Below are positions 13,717-64,000 of a stretch of 64,000 nt of DNA, piece after piece. The notes beneath the pieces are model-generated. The model had not been told where the DNA came from. It searched no databases and saw only the letters and a list, made by a program, of their open reading frames with translations. Source of the stretch: Malacoraja senta. Taxonomy: Eukaryota. The stretch's first letter is position 1. The number at the start of each line of letters is the position of its first letter. The translations under genes and the position numbers were made by a program. Location: the NCBI GenBank assembly GCA_038087875.1, contig JAXLNO010000796.1, positions 124,001 through 188,000 on the forward strand, in the 5' to 3' direction.

Positions 13717-15089
13717 CTGGCAAGATATGTATATGATGTTTGAGAGGCTTTTAGATCGACAAACTGATCTGCAGGAAATAGAGGGATATGGATCATGTTG
13801 CAGTTGGATGGGATCAGTTTAGCATCTCATCATGTTCACCACAGACATTGTGGGCCAAAGGGCCTCTTCCTGAGATGAACATTTTTATGTTTTATATAAA
13901 ATAAGATTAGTAATCAGCTGTAAGCCCCCTTGAACAGACTGCATCATTCAATAACATTATGTCCAATCTGATTTTGATCAGTTTACTGCATAATTCCTGC
14001 AATTTTTGATTCATTTCTGATCTAAAATTCTCTATATCTCAACCTAGAAAATATTCATTCACCTTGTCTTCACAGCTGGAATAGAAAGTTCAGGCAAATC
14101 ATACACCTCCTGGAAAATAAATCTTCTTCGTAACTATTTTAAAGAGGGACCCAACATGGGAGGACTGCTGAGAACAAAGATAACAAAGAGGGTCCCGGGG
14201 TTGGGGGGGGAGGGGGCGCGGATAACACAGGTGAACCCAACATGGAGGGGCTGCCGAGAACAAAGAGGGACCATTGGGGACTGTAATGATTACTTTGTAA
14301 CTGTGTCGACACCCTATACATGGTGACTTGTGTATGTATACCTTGTGTATGTTATGCAAAGCAAAGAATTTCACTGTGACATGTCACATGTGATAATAAA
14401 GTATCAATCAATCAAATAGGCGACCTTTTATTCCAAAATGTGGCGCAATGTATGACTTTGGAATCACAGGGTAACTGCAGTGAAGACAGCATTTGAAAAA
14501 TTAATGGCTGAATGTAAAGTCATCAGTCAGCATTGATACAATAAAGAGCATAGAACAGTACAGCACAAGAACAGGCCCTTTGACCCACAATGTTTGTGCC
14601 GAACATGATGCCAAGACCAATTGTTATCTGCTTGCACATAATCCATATCCATCCATTCCCTGCATATACATGTGCCTATCTAAAAGTCTCTTAAATGCCA
14701 CTATCATATCTGCTTCCACCACCACCTCCAGCAGCACATTCCAGTCACTCACCACCCTTGGCGTAAAACACTTGTCCTGCACATCTTTTTTTAACTTTGC
14801 CACTCATTGTAAAGCAATACCTGCTCTTATTTGATATTTCCTTCCTGGGTAAAAAGTCTGATGGTCTACCCTATCTCTACTCCTCCCAGTTTGATATATT
14901 ACTGTCAGGTCTCCCCTCAATCCCCGACATTCCAGAGAAAACAATCCAACTGTCCAGTCTGTCCAACTTCTCCCTGTGGCTAATACCCCACTAATCCAGG
15001 CATCATTCCGGTAGACCTCCTCTGCATCCCAAAGGAAGCTGATTGTGCTTCATGGTCCTCTCCTGGTCTCTGCTGTTGTCAGCTGGTAC

Positions 15090-15223
15090 CTGTTCATTGA
15101 AAGGTTTTCTCTTTTTCCTCTTCTTCCAGCAACCAATTCCAAGGATGATCCCCAGGAGAATGAGAGGAACAATTACAGCTCCAGTCACGATCCTAATCTT
15201 CATATCTTCTTTCACTGCCCTCT
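15090..15223 (-). CDS. MHC class I-like exon 5, connecting peptide, transmembrane and start of cytoplasmic tail
   Basis: Acceptor CAACAG in phase 1, then (E)RAVKEDMKIRIVTGAVIVPLILLGIILGIGCWKKRKKRKPFNEQ. Hydrophobic span followed by a KKRKKRK stop-transfer cluster. Possible donor GTACCA after 15090, otherwise read-through to TGA at 15003-15005. Confidence 0.8.
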
Positions 15224-15540
15224 CTGTTGGCATATACAGTGGCTTGCAAAAGTATTCATACCCCTTGAACTTTTCCACATTTTGTCACGTTACAACCACA
15301 AGCGTAAATGTATTTTATTGGGATTTTATGTGATAGACCAACATAAAGTGGCACATAATTGTGAAGTGGAAGGAAAATTATACATGGTTTTCAAATTTTT
15401 TTACAAATAAAAAACTGAAAAGTGTCGCGTGCGAAAATATTCAGCCCCCTTTACTCTGATACCCCTAAATAAAATCCAGTGCAACCAATTGCCTTCAGAA
15501 GTCACCTTATTAGTAAATAGAGTCCACTTGTGTGTAATCT

Positions 15541-15883
15541 CGGGACGACAGATGGCGCAATGGGCTAAGTGTTCGGCTGGCAACCGGAAGGTAGCCGGTT
15601 CGAATCCCGCTTGGAGTGCATACTGTCGTTGTGTCCTTGGGCAAGACACTTCACCCACCTTTGCCTGCGTGTGAATGTGTGTGAGTGATTGGTGGTGGTC
15701 GGAGGGGCCGTAGGCGCAGATTAGCAGCCACGCTTCCGTCAGTCTGCCCCAGGGCAGCTGTGGCTACAGAAGTAGCTCACCACCACCGAGTGTGACTGAG
15801 GAGTGAATGAATAATGCGATGTAAAGCGCCGAGTATTAGAAAGGCGCTATATAAATCCCATCCATTATTATTATTATTATTAT
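15541..15883 (+). mobile_element. tRNA-derived CORE-SINE (AFC-like) inserted in the Tc1 5-prime region
   Basis: A box TGGCGCAATGG, B box GGTTCGAATCC, CORE-like GTGTCCTTGGGCAAGACACTTCACC and an (ATT)n tail. TSD TAATCT at 15535-40 and 15884-89. Confidence 0.85.
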
Positions 15884-15964
15884 TAATCTAATCTCAGTAT
15901 AAATACAGCTGTTCTGTGAAGGCCTCAGAGGTTTGTTAGAGAACATTAGTGAACAAACAACATC

Positions 15965-16986
15965 ATGAAGCCAAAGGAACACACCAGACAGGTCAGGGAT
16001 AAAGTTGTGGAGAAGTTTAAAACAGGGTTAGGTTATAAATAAATATCCCAAGCTTTGAACATCTCACGGAGCACTGTTCAATCCCTCATCCGAAAATGGA
16101 AAGAGTATGGCACAACTGCAAACCTACCAAGACATGGCCGTCCACCTAAACTGACAGGCCGGGCAAGGAGAGCATTGATCAGAGAAGCAGCCAAGAGGCC
16201 CATGGTAACTCTGCAGGAGCTGCAGAGATCCACAGCTCAGGTGGGAGAATCTGTCCACAGGAAAACTATTAGTCGTGCACTCCACAAATCGGGCCTTTAT
16301 GGAAGAGTGGCAAGAAGAAAGCCATTGTTGAAAAAAGCCCATAAGAAGTCCCGTTTGCAGTTTGCCACAAGCCATGTGGGGGACACAGCAAACATGTGGA
16401 GGAAGGTGCTCTGGTCAGATGAGACCAAAATTGAAGTTTTTGGCCTAAATGCAAAACGCTATGTGTGGCGGAAACCTAACACTGCACATCACCCTGAACA
16501 CACCATCCCCACTGTGAAACATGGTGGTGGCAGCATTATGCTGTGGGGATGCTTTTCTTCAGCAGGGACAGGGAAGCTGGTCAGAGTTGATGGGGGAAGA
16601 TGGATGGAGCCAAATACAGGGCAATCTTGGAAGAAAACCTGTTAGAGTCTGCAAAAGACTTGAGACCGGGGCGGAAGTTCACCTTCCAGCAGGACAACGA
16701 CCCTAAACATACAGCCAGAGCTACAATGGAATGGTTTAGATCAAAGCGTATTCATGTGTTAGAATGGCCCAGTCAAAGTCCAGACCTAAATCCAATTGAG
16801 AATCTCTGGCAAGACTTGAAAATTGCTGTTCACAGATGCTCTCCATCCAATCTGACTGAGCTTGAGCTATTTTGCAAAGAAGAATGGGCAAAAATTTCAG
16901 TCTCTAGATGTGCAAAGCTGGTAGAGATATACCCCAAAAGACTTGCAGCTGTAATTGCAGCGAAAGGTGGTTCTACAAAGTATTGA
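15965..16986 (+). pseudogene. Tc1 DD34E transposase, inactivated
   Basis: MKPKEHTRQVRDKVVEKF start, GRPPKL AT-hook, WSDE, QQDND and PIEN with 34 residues between the second D and E. TAA at 16040-16042 and a frameshift in the G-run near 16590. Confidence 0.95.
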
Positions 16987-18349
16987 CTCAGGGGGGCTGA
17001 ATACTTTTGCACGCGACACTTTTCAGTTTTTTATTTGTAACAAAATTTGAAAACCATGTATCATTTTCCTTCCACTTCACAATTATGCACCACTTTGTGT
17101 TGGTCTATCACATAAAATCCCAATAAAATACATTTACGTTTGTGGTTGTAACGTGACAAAATGTGGAAAAGTTCAAGGGGTATGAAAACTTTTGCAAGCC
17201 ACTGTATAGTGCATTTTAAACATTTAGTGATCAATAACAACATTGTAATGATTTTATTATCTAAATTAAAGTAGCACTGTTCATATCTAATTAAAAAGTA
17301 ATAACGTTTTAGATTTAAGTATTTATACAGAGGATGGATGTGCTTAAAATGATCAATGAAAAATCATTAAGTTCATATTAGCATTGAGGTATTGAGATTT
17401 TATCTGCAGCATTTAATTAAGAATTTAAAGAATCAAGTACGTCAGAAATATATGACTATTTACAGTGTAGAGGTCAACAAGGCCATTTTCTTATGTTGAT
17501 GATTGTTATTATAGCAAATAAAAGTGAACCCATTTATAGTTGATAAAACTTCAAAGGTTTTAATCTTTGCTGATATTTCAATGATATCTGAGTTTAATTT
17601 TCTCACATACACATGCTCTCTCTTTCTCTCTCTCTCCCCCTCACTGTCTCACACACATGAGCCCACACACACACACATAGGCACACACAGACATTAACAC
17701 TACTGTCTATTTGTACTGACCAGCAATCTTAACCATGTCAGCTTGGCCCTGGTGTGAAGATCTTTGCAGAGGTCTTGTCTGGAACAAATAAGTCAGCTAC
17801 AGAACAGGTGCTGCTACTTCAGCCTGATAATATGGCACCACTATTGGTCTTTTGTGTAACTAGCTACTATCAGAAAATTAGCTAGATGCCCAAGGAAGAA
17901 GATAAGAGACCTTGTCCAGGATCAGCCTATCTTGCTTCCACTGTTCCTACATTTGGATGGGTGAGTTAAGGGTGACATAAGAATAATTTTGACCATAAGA
18001 TATTGGAGCGGAATTATGCCTTTCAAGTCCATTGAGTCTACTCCACCATTCAGTCATAGCAGATCTATTTTTTACCGCTAAATCCCATTCTCTAGCCTTC
18101 TCCCTGTAACCTTTGTCACCCGTACTCATCAAGAACCTATCAATCTCTGCTTGAAAAATATGCAATGACTTGACCCACACAGCTGTTTGTATCAATGAAT
18201 TCCACAGATTCACCACCCTGTGACTAAAGAGATTCCTCCTCATCTCCATATTGAAGGTAGGTATTTTTATTGTGAGGCTGTGCTAGACTCTCCCATTACT
18301 GAAAACTTCCTTTCCCATCAACTAACCAGGCATTTCATTATCTGGTAGG

Positions 18350-22327: not shown

Positions 22328-22968
22328 CACTAGGTGGAACTGCTGCCTTACAGCGCCAGAGACCCGGTTCAATTCTGACTACGGGTCCCGTCTGTACAGA
22401 GTTTTGTACCTTCTCCCCGGGACTTGCGTGGGTTTTGCCTGGATCTCCGGTTTCCTCACTCAGTCCAAAGACATACAGGTTTGTAGGTTAATTGGCTTGG
22501 TATAATTGTAAATTGTCCCCTAATAAGTAAGATAATGTAAGTGTGCAGGGATCGCTGGTTGACGCAGACTCGGTGGGCTGAAGGGCCGGTTTCTGCGCTG
22601 TATCTCTTAAACTAAAACCACATTCCATTGACTATCAATAATTATGAGCAATTAGATAACCACAAATTAATAATGGGTGGCACAGTGGCGTAGCGGTAGA
22701 GCTGCTGCCTTACTGCACCAGAGACCTGGGTTTGATCCTGACTACAGGTGCTGTCTGCAAGGACATTGTATGTTCTCCCTGTGACTGCGTGGGTTTCCTC
22801 CCACACTACAAAGACATACAGGTTTGTAGGTTACTTGGCTTAGGTAAAATTGTAAATTGTCCGTACTGTGTAGGTTAGTGTAAATGTATGGGTTGATCAC
22901 TATTCAGCGAGGACTCAGTGAGCTGAGGGGCCTGTATCTGCAGCATATCTCTAAAGCCTAAAGTCTAA
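22328..22968 (+). mobile_element. Two V-SINE (HE1-like) copies (about 22328-22618 and 22675-22968)
   Basis: Same head, V-domain and tail as 10898-11224. Confidence 0.8.
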
Positions 22969-23063
22969 ATCCACAGCTTAGTTAAGAGTGTGAGTTGAGA
23001 CTGTTATCTCAGTCCAGGAGGTTTATGGTCTCAAGTGATCAGCCTCATTGACTTGCCACTTAC

Positions 23064-23336
23064 CCTGTGGAACATTGACTCCCTGCAGCAGAGTTGCATG
23101 TTCGATGTAACAGGAGAATTTTGCCACATCTTCTCTATTCAGTTGAATTGTATTCTTCAGCTGGTAAGTCCCATCCCAATTGGGCAACAGATCACTGGAT
23201 TCAGACTCATGGACCCCCTCACCATCTCTCAGCCACGTTACATCGATGGCCCGTGGCTAGAAGCCTGTGACAAGGCAGGAGAGTCTCAGTGATTGCGACC
23301 CATCACGTTTAATCCCAATAAACACCTCAGGGGTTT
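23064..23336 (-). CDS. MHC class I-like exon 4, alpha3 C1-set Ig domain with premature TAG
   Basis: Acceptor CTTGCAG, donor GTAAGT, 273 bp. (E)TPEVFIGIKRDGSQSLRLSCLVTGF*PRAIDVTWLRDGEGVHESESSDLLPNWDGTYQLKNTIQLNREDVAKFSCYIEHATLLQGVNVPQ. The stop replaces the Tyr of the GFYP motif, which is why the ORF track misses this exon. Confidence 0.92.
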
Positions 23337-24150
23337 CTGCAAGTGTAAGAAGAGTCAGAATCAGTGAAGACATGAACAAAAGCCTTCAATTGTAAGATCA
23401 CTGCAACTCACCACTTTCCCAATCAGAGTTTTTTCTCTGGCTGAACTAAGTTTTCAGCCTAGACCCAAAATGCTGGAATAACTCAGCAGGTCAGGCAGCA
23501 TTCTGGAGAGAAGGAATGCCCAGAGATGCTATCTGACCCACTGAGTTACACCAACATCTTCTATCTTCAGTGTAAACCAGCATCTGCAGTTCTATCTTGC
23601 ACAAAGTTTACAGCCTTTTCTCTTTTCATTTTGCATTTCTGGCAAAACAACAAAACATTTAGCTTTAATATCACTGACATGCTCCTTATCTTAGCTCCAG
23701 ACTTTAACTGACAGCACAGATGAAAGGGGAATGCAGGCCCAATGGAGGAGTATAACTCACCATTGGGATTGATACTGTAGACATGATTGCTTCTACCTGT
23801 TCATGAATCTCTGCTGAATAATAACACTAAATATTCCAAGAGGGAATGGGAGGAAGAAGTTCTTCAAATAGAGAACTGTTGGAAATTGAATGTCACCATC
23901 CCAAGGAGTAATAGAGGCAAATAGAGAATCTGATTGGGTTTCTGATCAGTTCAGCAACAGACCCTTCAGGCCACAAGGTCGGTGCTAAACATAAGACCAA
24001 GATACATATTCCTCCATTTCCTGAATATCTATATGACTGTGGATAAAGGACACTGGTACAATATTTATCTTTCACTTGCACTTCCTACCCACTGGTTCCA
24101 TCTAAGAGGCACGTTGCCAGACAATTTACTGATACCCACGTTGTAGAACA

Positions 24151-24433
24151 GGGTGGCGAAGCGGTCGAGCTACTGCCTTACAGCGCCAGAGACCTGGGTT
24201 TGTTACTAACTACGGGTGCTTGTCTTTACAGAGTTCTCCCTGTGACCTGCGTGGGTTTTATCCGAGATCTTCGGTTTCCCCTCACACTCGAAAGACGTAC
24301 AAATTTGTAGGTTAATTGGATTGGTATAAATGCAAATTGTCCCTAGTGTGTGTAGGATAGTGTTAGTGTGCGGGCATGGCTGCTCGGTGCGGTCTCGGTG
24401 GGTTTCCGCGCTGTATCTCTAAACTAAACTAAA
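24151..24433 (+). mobile_element. V-SINE (HE1-like) in class I intron 3
   Basis: Same consensus, CTAAACTAAACTAAA tail. Confidence 0.8.
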
Positions 24434-24532
24434 TAATTACTCAAGTGACAGCCTGACGTGCATGATATTTCCCACCTGATCTATCCAGAGGATATCCTCT
24501 GGCCCATCAGTCAGAGTGCCTACGTCGTGTAC

Positions 24533-24808
24533 CTCTCCTCTGTAGTGCTTCTTGTCCACACTCCAGATATATCCGCAGCCACTTCACACAGTCCTTCTCC
24601 AGGAGATCTTTAAAATACTTGTTCATGAAGGTGTTGACGTTCCACCGATCTGCTAGCATCTGGAAATCTGGACGTAGTGCAATCCAGCGCATTCTGTCCT
24701 TGTCAAAAGCACAGGCATCCTCCCCATCATAACCCAGTCTGACAAACCCATCAGTGGAATTGTCACTGTCCACTTCACAGCCGCAGAAACCCTGCACAAA
24801 GCAAACAG
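24533..24808 (-). CDS. MHC class I-like exon 3, alpha2 domain
   Basis: Pyrimidine-rich tract plus CCCCAG acceptor, weak GTACAC donor, 276 bp (canonical alpha2 exon size). (T)VCFVQGFCGCEVDSDNSTDGFVRLGYDGEDACAFDKDRMRWIALRPDFQMLADRWNVNTFMNKYFKDLLEKDCVKWLRIYLECGQEALQRR has QxxxGC, YDGxD and CxxWLxxYL. Confidence 0.95.
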
Positions 24809-25869
24809 CTGGGGCTGAGGTAGGGGTGGAGGATTTGTGTTGGGGAGAGTGGATGGAAGGGAGAGGCAATTTACAAATCAGTTCTCAGCATGGTACAAAC
24901 AGGCATAACAGAACACAACATGGAGCTGTACAGCACAGGAGCAGGTTTAGCTCAGAGATACAGCGCGGAAACAGGCCCTTCGGCCCACCGAGTCCGCACC
25001 GACCAGTGGTCCCCGCATATTAACACTATCCTACACAGACTACTTTTCTTTTCCAGCTTTCTCCACTCTACCCCATCACTCTAAATGGTCCTGGTCTCAT
25101 ATGTTTTCTGTCCATTTTTCCACAGCATGCTGCCTGACTCGTTGAGTTCCTCCTGTTTGTTTTAAATTCAGATTGGCAGCATCTGCAGTTTGCTGTGACT
25201 CCATCTTAGCACAATGGATGATCAATGTGGATTCAGTGAGCAGAAGGGCCGGTTTCCATGATGTGTGACTCAATGACCCATGGTCTATATACTGAGGGCA
25301 TGGACTAACCTCAAGTGTTATGGGGGGGGAGCTTTACTGTTGCGGATGTAACACTAAAGGAGTTCTGCTGTGTCAGAAGGGTGGAACTCAGATTCTGCAC
25401 TGTCGTACATAAAGAACAGAGGAAGAAGTGCATTGTCAGATGGGCAATGCTACAGAGCCAACAGGTCAGTCTGAAGGTTAAGGCAATGCAGATGGGAAGT
25501 ACATCAAGGCTGTTGCACTGTGTGGGATTGCTACACCCTCTGAGGATTGTTGCCAATATTGAGGGGATGCTGGATTAACACAATATTATTACTGAGGGAA
25601 TACCTCATAGTCACCATCAACCAGCTTAAATCAAGATCCCATCTCTAGATGATCAGGCTATAAATAAACTAATGGTTTCTCCCTCATTCCAGCCCAACAA
25701 AACAGATGATCCAATCCATCCACTTATTACTGGTGTTGAATATCAAATGCTTAACCCATAAAGAGACTATCACCAGCCAACTGTTATGACTGTGTGTTCA
25801 GCAGTTAGGACACATTAAATATAGACGATGGGCCGTGTCTCTATCAAAATGTTATGGAGTAAATGTCTG

Positions 25870-26490
25870 AAACAGCATCAATGGTGCTGAAGTGAAAAAG
25901 GTTGAGAGTTTCTGGTTCCCCTACTGCCTCAGGAGACTAAGGAAATGCGGCATCTCCAATGACTCTTACAAACTTCTACAAATGTGCCATAGAAAGCATA
26001 CTGACAGGTTGCATCACAACTTAGTTTGGAAAGAGTTCTGCCCAAGACCGCTGGAAATTGCAGAGAGGTGGAGATGTAGCACAGTCGATCACACAAACAT
26101 GATTCCCCACCAGTGAATCCATCTGTATTTCAACTGGTTCAGGAAAGCAGACAACATAATCAAAGATTTGTCCCGTTCTGGTCACTCCTTCTTCCTGCAG
26201 AAGGTACGTAAGCATTAAAGCGTGCACCACCAGACTCAGTAACTGTTTCCTCCCCTATGTTATCAGGTTTCTGAACAGTCCTCCCTTATGCTAGGGTTCA
26301 CCTCAACCCCATTGTAGACACTGGACTTTGTCTCTGGCACTGGTACATTACAATGCTGAGAACTACATTCTGCACTCTTTGCTCTACCTATTGTACGAGT
26401 TTGGTTTGATTGTATTTATGAATAGTTTTCTTTGATGTGATTGACTAACGCAAAAAAAGTGTATCAGAGAATCATGTGTCAACAATAAAA
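25870..26490 (+). mobile_element. Rex1/Babar-type LINE 3-prime fragment in class I intron 2
   Basis: Degenerate CLRRLRKCG...TNFYKCAIESILTGCIT motif and a CAATAAA-microsatellite tail. Confidence 0.65.
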
Positions 26491-26553
26491 CTAAAACAAA
26501 ATCCATCTGTGTCATCACTGAGTGTCTACCCCAGGTCCGCTCACGACACTTAC

Positions 26554-26814
26554 TCGAGATACCATGTTGCTGTTGGTAGACTATCTCAGCATTTCCTCTG
26601 ACAATCCCATGAAAACCTGCAACTGTGATGGCCATTGAATCCCAGTGATCCTGCGGGAAAGACTGGGCCATCCATCGCTGTCTGGGAACAGCCCGCTCTA
26701 GTGTGCTGTCAAAATATGCTATCTGGACGTCATCCAGCATTGCTACCATACTGTACTCAGGCAGCTCATTCAATCCATGGTTCAACAGGTAGTAAAATGC
26801 AAGATGGTGTAAAT
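26554..26814 (-). CDS. MHC class I-like exon 2, alpha1 domain
   Basis: Acceptor TTGCAG, donor GTAAGT, 261 bp. (D)LHHLAFYYLLNHGLNELPEYSMVAMLDDVQIAYFDSTLERAVPRQRWMAQSFPQDHWDSMAITVAGFHGIVRGNAEIVYQQQHGIS carries the class I hallmarks H3, D29-D30, FDS, PRxxWM and W60. Confidence 0.93.
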
Positions 26815-27005
26815 CTGCAATGCATAAACAAAAATAAGTATGATTGTATCATTCACTGAAAATAACTAAGTTATTAATGCTAAAACTGATAACAATACAA
26901 TAACTTTGAATAAGGGAGTCACAAGGACCTGCAGATGCAAGTGCTGGATGAACTCAGTGGGGCAGGCAGCATCAATGATCAGGTGACAATTTGGGTCAGG
27001 AGCCT

Positions 27006-30752: not shown

Positions 30753-30804
30753 CAGAGGAGACAGTGGCCACACCGTAAGTGTTCAGTAAGGTAAAAAGAA
30801 GCAT
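30753..30804 (-). CDS. MHC class I-like exon 1, signal peptide MLLFTLLNTYGVATVSS(D)
   Basis: ATG at 30804-30802, 17 codons plus 1 nt, then donor GTAAGC. Hydrophobic leader ending in small residues. Phase 1 joins the alpha1 exon (G+AT = Asp). Lies directly downstream of the X2/Y promoter module. Confidence 0.8.
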
Positions 30805-63697: not shown

Positions 63698-64000
63698 GTA
63701 AGTGCTTTCTCTTCACCGGTCACAACCACGTTGCTTTACTTTATCATTGTCCGTGTAAACCCACACCCCATTGTCAATCTCTCTTTCCTCTCCAAGTCCC
63801 ACAAAACCACCCATCCTTGCTGGAGCTCCATTTCTGAGCCTCTCCCATTAGCTCCCTCCCTCCCCTTCCCCTGCACCAACATGGTCCTTTTCAAAGTCAG
63901 AAATGGCCCCCGGTGAGTAGTGTGACATAGTTGTCCACACCATCCTCCCCAACATCTCCCCACCACAGTCCAGGTAGGTGGAACTGCCCTTGACTTATAG

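Follow-up and report, generated by a model that had tools for sequence, protein, structure and literature searches.

In the 64-kb stretch of skate DNA analysed here (the window), a non-classical MHC class I gene that is conserved in sharks and rays is interrupted by a single in-frame TAG in its alpha3 exon. The locus is probably a young pseudogene, or a null allele that is at high frequency or fixed. A preliminary description of this DNA had named a young pseudogene or a null allele among its readings, and this part of it is upheld by three observations: the TAG is real in the contigs of two samples, it is derived (three related skate sequences have TAC), and the reading frame shows no other lesion.

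A five-exon class I-like gene with one reading-frame lesion

The class I-like gene consists of five exons on the minus strand of the window (Table 1). Pfam and PDB matches, together with the exon model, reveal the layout of the MHC class I superfamily, in which an MHC_I platform is followed by a C1-set alpha3 domain and then by a transmembrane (TM) segment, with phase 1-1 exons. A profile-free protein search with alpha1 as the query returned a 95%-identical match, XP_055486430.1 of Leucoraja erinacea, labelled 'major histocompatibility complex class I-related gene protein-like'. The corresponding L. erinacea locus, L001, is collinear with the window at ~88-92% identity (about 90%) along ~30 kb, and all splice sites of the window gene are conserved in this orthologue.

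Table 1 Features of the class I-like gene in the window
Feature	Positions	Strand	Description
Leader exon	30753..30804	(-)	ATG at 30804-30802, 17 codons + 1 base, donor GTAAGC; read directly
alpha1 exon	26554..26814	(-)	Phase 1-1, donor GA/GTAAGT; Pfam MHC_I
alpha2 exon	24533..24814	(-)	282 nt, phase 1-1; Pfam MHC_I, E 2e-16
alpha3 exon (Ig C1-set)	23064..23336	(-)	273 nt, phase 1-1; Pfam C1-set match after the stop
In-frame TAG	23257..23259	(-)	Codon 225/363, in place of the GFYP Tyr; 193 nt upstream of the last exon junction
Tc1-type transposon	15237..17206	(-)	1,970 bp, TA target duplication; 11 nt upstream of the last exon acceptor AG
Last coding exon	15003..15223	(-)	Connecting peptide, TM, basic stop-transfer, cytoplasmic tail; TGA at 15005-15003

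Each exon was compared with its L. erinacea counterpart and with solved structures. The leader exon is conserved, with two silent changes. The alpha1 exon differs at 9 of 261 nt and has 9ch4_A as its best solved-structure match (E 2.4e-22), while alpha2, which differs at 9 of 282 nt, has both disulfide cysteines in place and finds MR1 chains as its top PDB matches (E 6.5e-17). The alpha3 exon is 94.5% identical to that of the orthologue, and its acceptor and donor are identical; it is bounded by ...CTTGCAG before 23336 and GTAAGT after 23064, and its alignment to 9ch4_A (E 6.9e-15) begins directly past the stop. The last exon matches the C-terminus of XP_055486430.1. The introns carry SINEs typical of sharks and rays.

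Joining the leader, alpha1, alpha2, alpha3 and TM/tail exons yields a frame of 363 codons that closes normally at a TGA and is broken by one internal stop. The TAG at 23259-23257 is the sole reading-frame lesion, the other 362 codons being open, and the rebuilt model thus confirms the earlier claim of a single TAG that replaces the Tyr of GFYP. On the minus strand the context of the stop is ...GGC TTC TAG CCA CGG..., and alpha3 reads TPEVFIGIKRDGSQSLRLSCLVTGF-stop-PRAIDVTWLRDGEG... The companion claim, that the leader, alpha1, alpha2 and TM are open and the splice sites retained, holds for the frame and the sites; the TM exon, however, has not been left untouched, as a Tc1-type transposon lies 11 nt upstream of its acceptor.

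This is the sole class I gene of the 64-kb window, in which no second one was found. A weak alpha2-like match at 63944-63994 (E 0.71) was considered as a second class I gene and set aside, because reading the segment shows nothing class I-like.

The Leucoraja erinacea orthologue and its dead duplicate

Read with canonical splice sites, the L. erinacea gene is open from end to end, as is a leader that is missing from the NCBI model. The alpha2 of that model, XP_055486430.1, is 12 residues longer (GTRPRHSDWWNG; L001:12984-13019). We rejected this version, since its intron would start with AT while having an AG acceptor, and the models of all other species use the canonical donor; the longer alpha2 is probably a modelling artefact. 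The start of the intron that follows the extension, ATATCCTCT, is a U12-like donor motif, paired here with an AG acceptor. The same motif occurs in the window (~24487-24495), where the extension would meet a TGA.

A second L. erinacea copy (P0177, locus L002:10226-14651, JAMYXN010000412.1) comprises alpha2 and alpha3 only and is dead: a TGA stands at the alpha2 disulfide Cys codon, both donors are affected by deletions and replacements are numerous. NCBI has modelled this dead fragment as a gene, with an XP-type protein model. As a candidate for the true orthologue it was rejected, because it retains only alpha2/alpha3, has a TGA and deletions not shared with the first copy, and is the more distant of the two. 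The partial duplicate served as the outgroup for polarising changes in alpha2 + alpha3.

Two tight clusters of replacements, HES to PGF and QLNR to ELIK, are present in the L. erinacea alpha3 (L001:19110-19200). Five of these changes (H>P, E>G, S>F, R>K and the N/I site) are either L. erinacea's own or unresolved, and Q>E is the window's own; organism C, one of the two related organisms described below, has both versions of the cluster sites. The clusters could be allelic lineages or conversion tracts. The introns of the two loci have also gained sequence by lineage, with an insertion of ~4.8 kb in L. erinacea intron 3 (L001:13656-18480 versus window 23870-23860) and ~3.3 kb extra beyond the Tc1 in the last intron of the window gene (window 21870-17512 versus L001:20532-21637).

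The stop codon is real

A single-base lesion in an otherwise perfect gene has the classic look of an error, and the preliminary description had asked whether TAC or TAT might in fact stand at 23257-23259. We compared contigs, rather than raw reads, over 22900-26900 from two runs of the same species, X1 and X2 (samples S1 and S2), and from two related organisms, B and C. X1 and X2 contain 81-85% of the region's words. One X1 contig (23028-23408) and one X2 contig (23210-23400) run unbroken over the stop, with no other letter at 23257 in either, and the TAG is read in the contigs of both runs at depths of ~170 and ~1,800. The variants held by X1 and X2 differ, for example at 25383 and 25566, so the two are not one data set filed twice; the samples may include the assembled individual itself. 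The TAG is real and is not an assembly error.

With the TAG found in the contigs of two separate runs, we consider a sequencing or assembly artefact extremely improbable. The same grade applies to recoding of a genuine stop, whether the UAG were read through or turned into UGG by A-to-I editing: TAG CCA CGG matches no read-through motif known to us, and there is no evidence of editing.

These contigs also bear on whether the TAG is only one allele of a gene that still works, the species having kept intact TAC alleles or a recent intact duplicate. Nearby variants break into separate contigs, those at 23868/9, 24639, 25604 and 25636 each being displayed with the variant base 31 letters from a contig end, and therefore a second allele at 23257 should have shown. 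In the contigs of these two samples, no Tyr-codon contig was found at a likeness of at least 85%, and the TAG was the sole allele detected, although Logan contigs may drop rare variants and a low-frequency TAC allele could go unseen. A segregating null allele would agree with the lack of any other frame lesion and of excess branch changes, as expected for a very young allele, and with the second, more ancestral-like haplotype or copy that X1 and X2 hold at flanking sites. Between 23001 and 23867, however, that second haplotype matches the window letter for letter, the TAG included, and neither of the two samples yields a Tyr-codon contig at 85% likeness or more. We therefore judge a segregating null allele unlikely; the locus is probably a young pseudogene, or a null allele that has become fixed or has reached high frequency.

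The second haplotype or copy seen in X1 and X2 spans 22992-26540. Fifteen of its variable sites were compared with L. erinacea, and at 14 of them it has the ancestral letter; in intron 2 (25323-25634) it differs from the window by up to 6.7%. Minor-allele shares in the two samples are ~10-50% rather than 1:1, which is a misfit for one diploid animal. Pooling of several animals in a sample, additional copies of the locus or gene conversion could lie behind this pattern.

The stop codon is derived and recent

In related organisms B and C (~7% diverged), every contig has a plus-strand G at 23257, giving TAC (Tyr). The same TAC occupies the stop position in both L. erinacea copies, XP_055486430.1 and its partial duplicate. 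By these comparisons the TAG is derived, a C-to-G change having converted TAC (Tyr) to TAG.

Amino-acid changes polarised against the other species number 13 on each of the two branches, that of the window and that of L. erinacea, and the terminal lengths of these branches are 0.051 and 0.045, respectively. In alpha2 + alpha3, with the dead duplicate as outgroup, the window lineage has 6 replacements plus the stop and 4 silent changes, against a replacement-to-silent ratio of 7:4 in L. erinacea. The matched changes on both branches indicate that the stop is recent relative to the split of the two skates; the substitution counts are small, and on their basis alone a constrained gene could not be told from a pseudogene.

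We propose that the C-to-G change in the Tyr codon of GFYP recently knocked the gene out. Nonsense-mediated decay usually follows a 50-55 nt rule; with 193 nt between the stop and the last exon junction downstream of it, the normally spliced mRNA would be expected to be removed by this pathway. Any protein that was made would end after alpha1, alpha2 and 25 residues of alpha3, and would have neither the beta2-microglobulin-binding Ig fold nor a membrane anchor. As far as can be predicted from the sequence, the TAG-bearing gene would give no useful transcript.

The gene belongs to a conserved elasmobranch lineage

A search with the L. erinacea protein recovered relatives at 54-72% identity in 11 other sharks and rays (Pristis, Mobula, Hypanus, Pristiophorus, Heptranchias, Scyliorhinus, Stegostoma, Hemiscyllium, Mustelus, Cetorhinus and Chiloscyllium), which NCBI labels 'MHC class I-related gene protein-like'. 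All 11 keep GFYP and the alpha3 domain, and alpha3 is therefore ancestral. In a quick maximum-likelihood tree, the window gene and its L. erinacea orthologue are joined with a support of 100, within a batoid clade (97) that is itself part of a lineage clade of 12 (100), whose branching broadly matches the split between sharks and rays. The nearest neighbour of this clade of 12, with a moderate support of 82, is a clade resembling PDB 9CH4. The tree thus places the window gene inside a conserved elasmobranch 'MR1-like' class Ib lineage.

A young MHC pseudogene is by itself common. Here, the lost gene is of modest interest: its lineage is retained in each of the 12 other shark and ray species from which a protein was recovered, and its neighbour in the tree is the clade resembling 9CH4, putatively that of the lipid-binding UFA/UGA genes.

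Changes outside the stop codon are consistent with general early decay

The preliminary description had also raised the possibility that the gene is on its way to an alpha3-less, EPCR-like or secreted form, and had offered the dN/dS of alpha1/alpha2 versus alpha3 as a test. Pairwise Nei-Gojobori comparison of the window gene with L. erinacea by domain gave a dN/dS of 0.40 for alpha1 + alpha2 (replacement:silent 11:7), 0.78 for alpha3 (10:4), 1.39 for TM/tail (15:3) and 0.62 for the whole gene (36:16), where the differences between domains are not significant and the counts are too few to tell the domains apart. The two genes differ by a dS of ~0.07, and their introns by ~10%. When the dead duplicate was used as outgroup, most alpha3 replacements fell on the L. 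erinacea branch. The test thus went against remodelling, with no alpha3-specific relaxation and no acceleration on the window lineage.

Other changes particular to the window lineage lie elsewhere in the gene. The terminal repeats of the Tc1 element differ at 1 position of ~58, as in a young element, and its site is empty at L. erinacea L001. The insertion displaces the original branch-point region by ~2 kb and leaves a weaker pyrimidine tract at the 15223 acceptor, and splicing at this acceptor may be harmed. In the tail, the last exon has lost 9 bp in frame, and comparison with Pristis and Mobula shows this deletion to be derived. Of five window-specific replacements in alpha1/alpha2, three (F19L, F109C and L185R) affect residues that are constant or nearly constant in other species. 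The Tc1, the tail deletion and these three replacements would fit general early decay better than a selective loss of alpha3. They fall in alpha1, alpha2, the tail and the TM acceptor, the very parts that an alpha1-alpha2-TM receptor needs, which argues against remodelling.

In-frame skipping of alpha3 is a general class I property

The preliminary description was correct in that alpha3, at 273 bp and phase 1-1, can be skipped so as to join alpha2 to TM in frame: the last bases of alpha2 are ...AGA G, and the first of the TM exon AG AGG. Yet the frame is kept simply because 273 = 91 x 3, which is equally true of the intact L. erinacea orthologue. In-frame skipping of alpha3 is a general property built into class I genes; it is not a sign of remodelling and should not be taken as evidence for it.

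The locus could in principle still encode a functional alpha3-less molecule, if exon 4 were skipped, perhaps with the aid of the nonsense change, and a leader-alpha1-alpha2-TM product of the MR1B or EPCR/ULBP type escaped decay. The in-frame skip, the precedents of the MR1B and HLA-G4 isoforms, and the leader, alpha1, alpha2 and TM that are still open all speak for such a molecule. Against it, the skip is generic, the intact orthologue having the same 273-nt exon, and the alpha3 splice sites are unchanged, so that nothing favours skipping. The acceptor on which the skipped form would depend, at 15223, has the 1.97-kb Tc1 11 nt upstream and the weakened pyrimidine tract, and window-specific replacements have struck conserved residues of alpha1/alpha2. 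Nor is relaxation specific to alpha3, a domain that the lineage keeps in every species seen. We therefore regard a functional alpha3-less molecule as very unlikely.

A more specific version, in which the TAG is fixed and the gene survives as an MR1B-like, membrane-bound alpha1-alpha2 platform without beta2-microglobulin, has in our view only a very slim chance of being correct. If true, such a survivor would be a living intermediate between a three-domain class I gene and a receptor of the EPCR/ULBP type. The proposal of remodelling into an alpha3-less EPCR-like or secreted form thus finds no support on any of these counts: the alpha3 exon and its splice sites are conserved, all relatives keep alpha3, alpha3 shows no relaxation of its own, and the remaining changes affect alpha1/alpha2, the tail and the TM acceptor. 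A young pseudogene, or a null allele at high frequency or fixed, remains the probable explanation.

Comparison with known class I-like systems

EPCR and ULBP/RAET1 are class I relatives made of alpha1 + alpha2 only, which have no alpha3 exon and no need for beta2-microglobulin. In the window gene, by contrast, an alpha3 exon of 273 nt is present and both of its splice sites are intact, and EPCR, ULBP and RAET1 resemble only the hypothetical skipped product of this gene. Closer parallels to that product are the alpha3-less splice isoforms of class I-like genes, MR1B (PMC7508857; bioRxiv 10.64898/2026.10.17.759879) and HLA-G4 (PMC3021195), in which exon 4 is likewise skipped with the frame kept and alpha2 is joined to TM (PMC7508857, PMC3021195). 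Unlike the window gene, which is known from DNA and whose full-length form is broken, MR1B and HLA-G4 have been documented as transcripts and are minor isoforms made by intact genes.

Among elasmobranch genes, UFA and UGA are described in reviews as CD1-like, lipid-binding class Ib genes of sharks and rays that are usually present in one or few copies (PMC12562908, PMC10751288). The window gene shares with them the family and the layout of three domains plus TM. Chain A of 9CH4, a putative UFA or UGA structure, is the best solved match to both alpha1 and alpha3 of the window gene; a literature search for 9CH4 and 8GM8 returned chance matches only. The window gene differs from UFA/UGA in its separate clade of 12 (support 100) and in an alpha1 identity of ~43-46%.

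The nearest comparison is XP_055486430.1 of L. erinacea, which has the same five exons and splice sites and 91% protein identity with the window gene. In contrast to the window gene, it has TAC (Tyr) at the position of the stop, no Tc1 before the last exon and three more tail codons. A skate with the null allele only would be a natural knockout, comparable with L. erinacea, in which one could ask what role the gene has and whether its loss is matched by the loss of a corresponding T-cell population.
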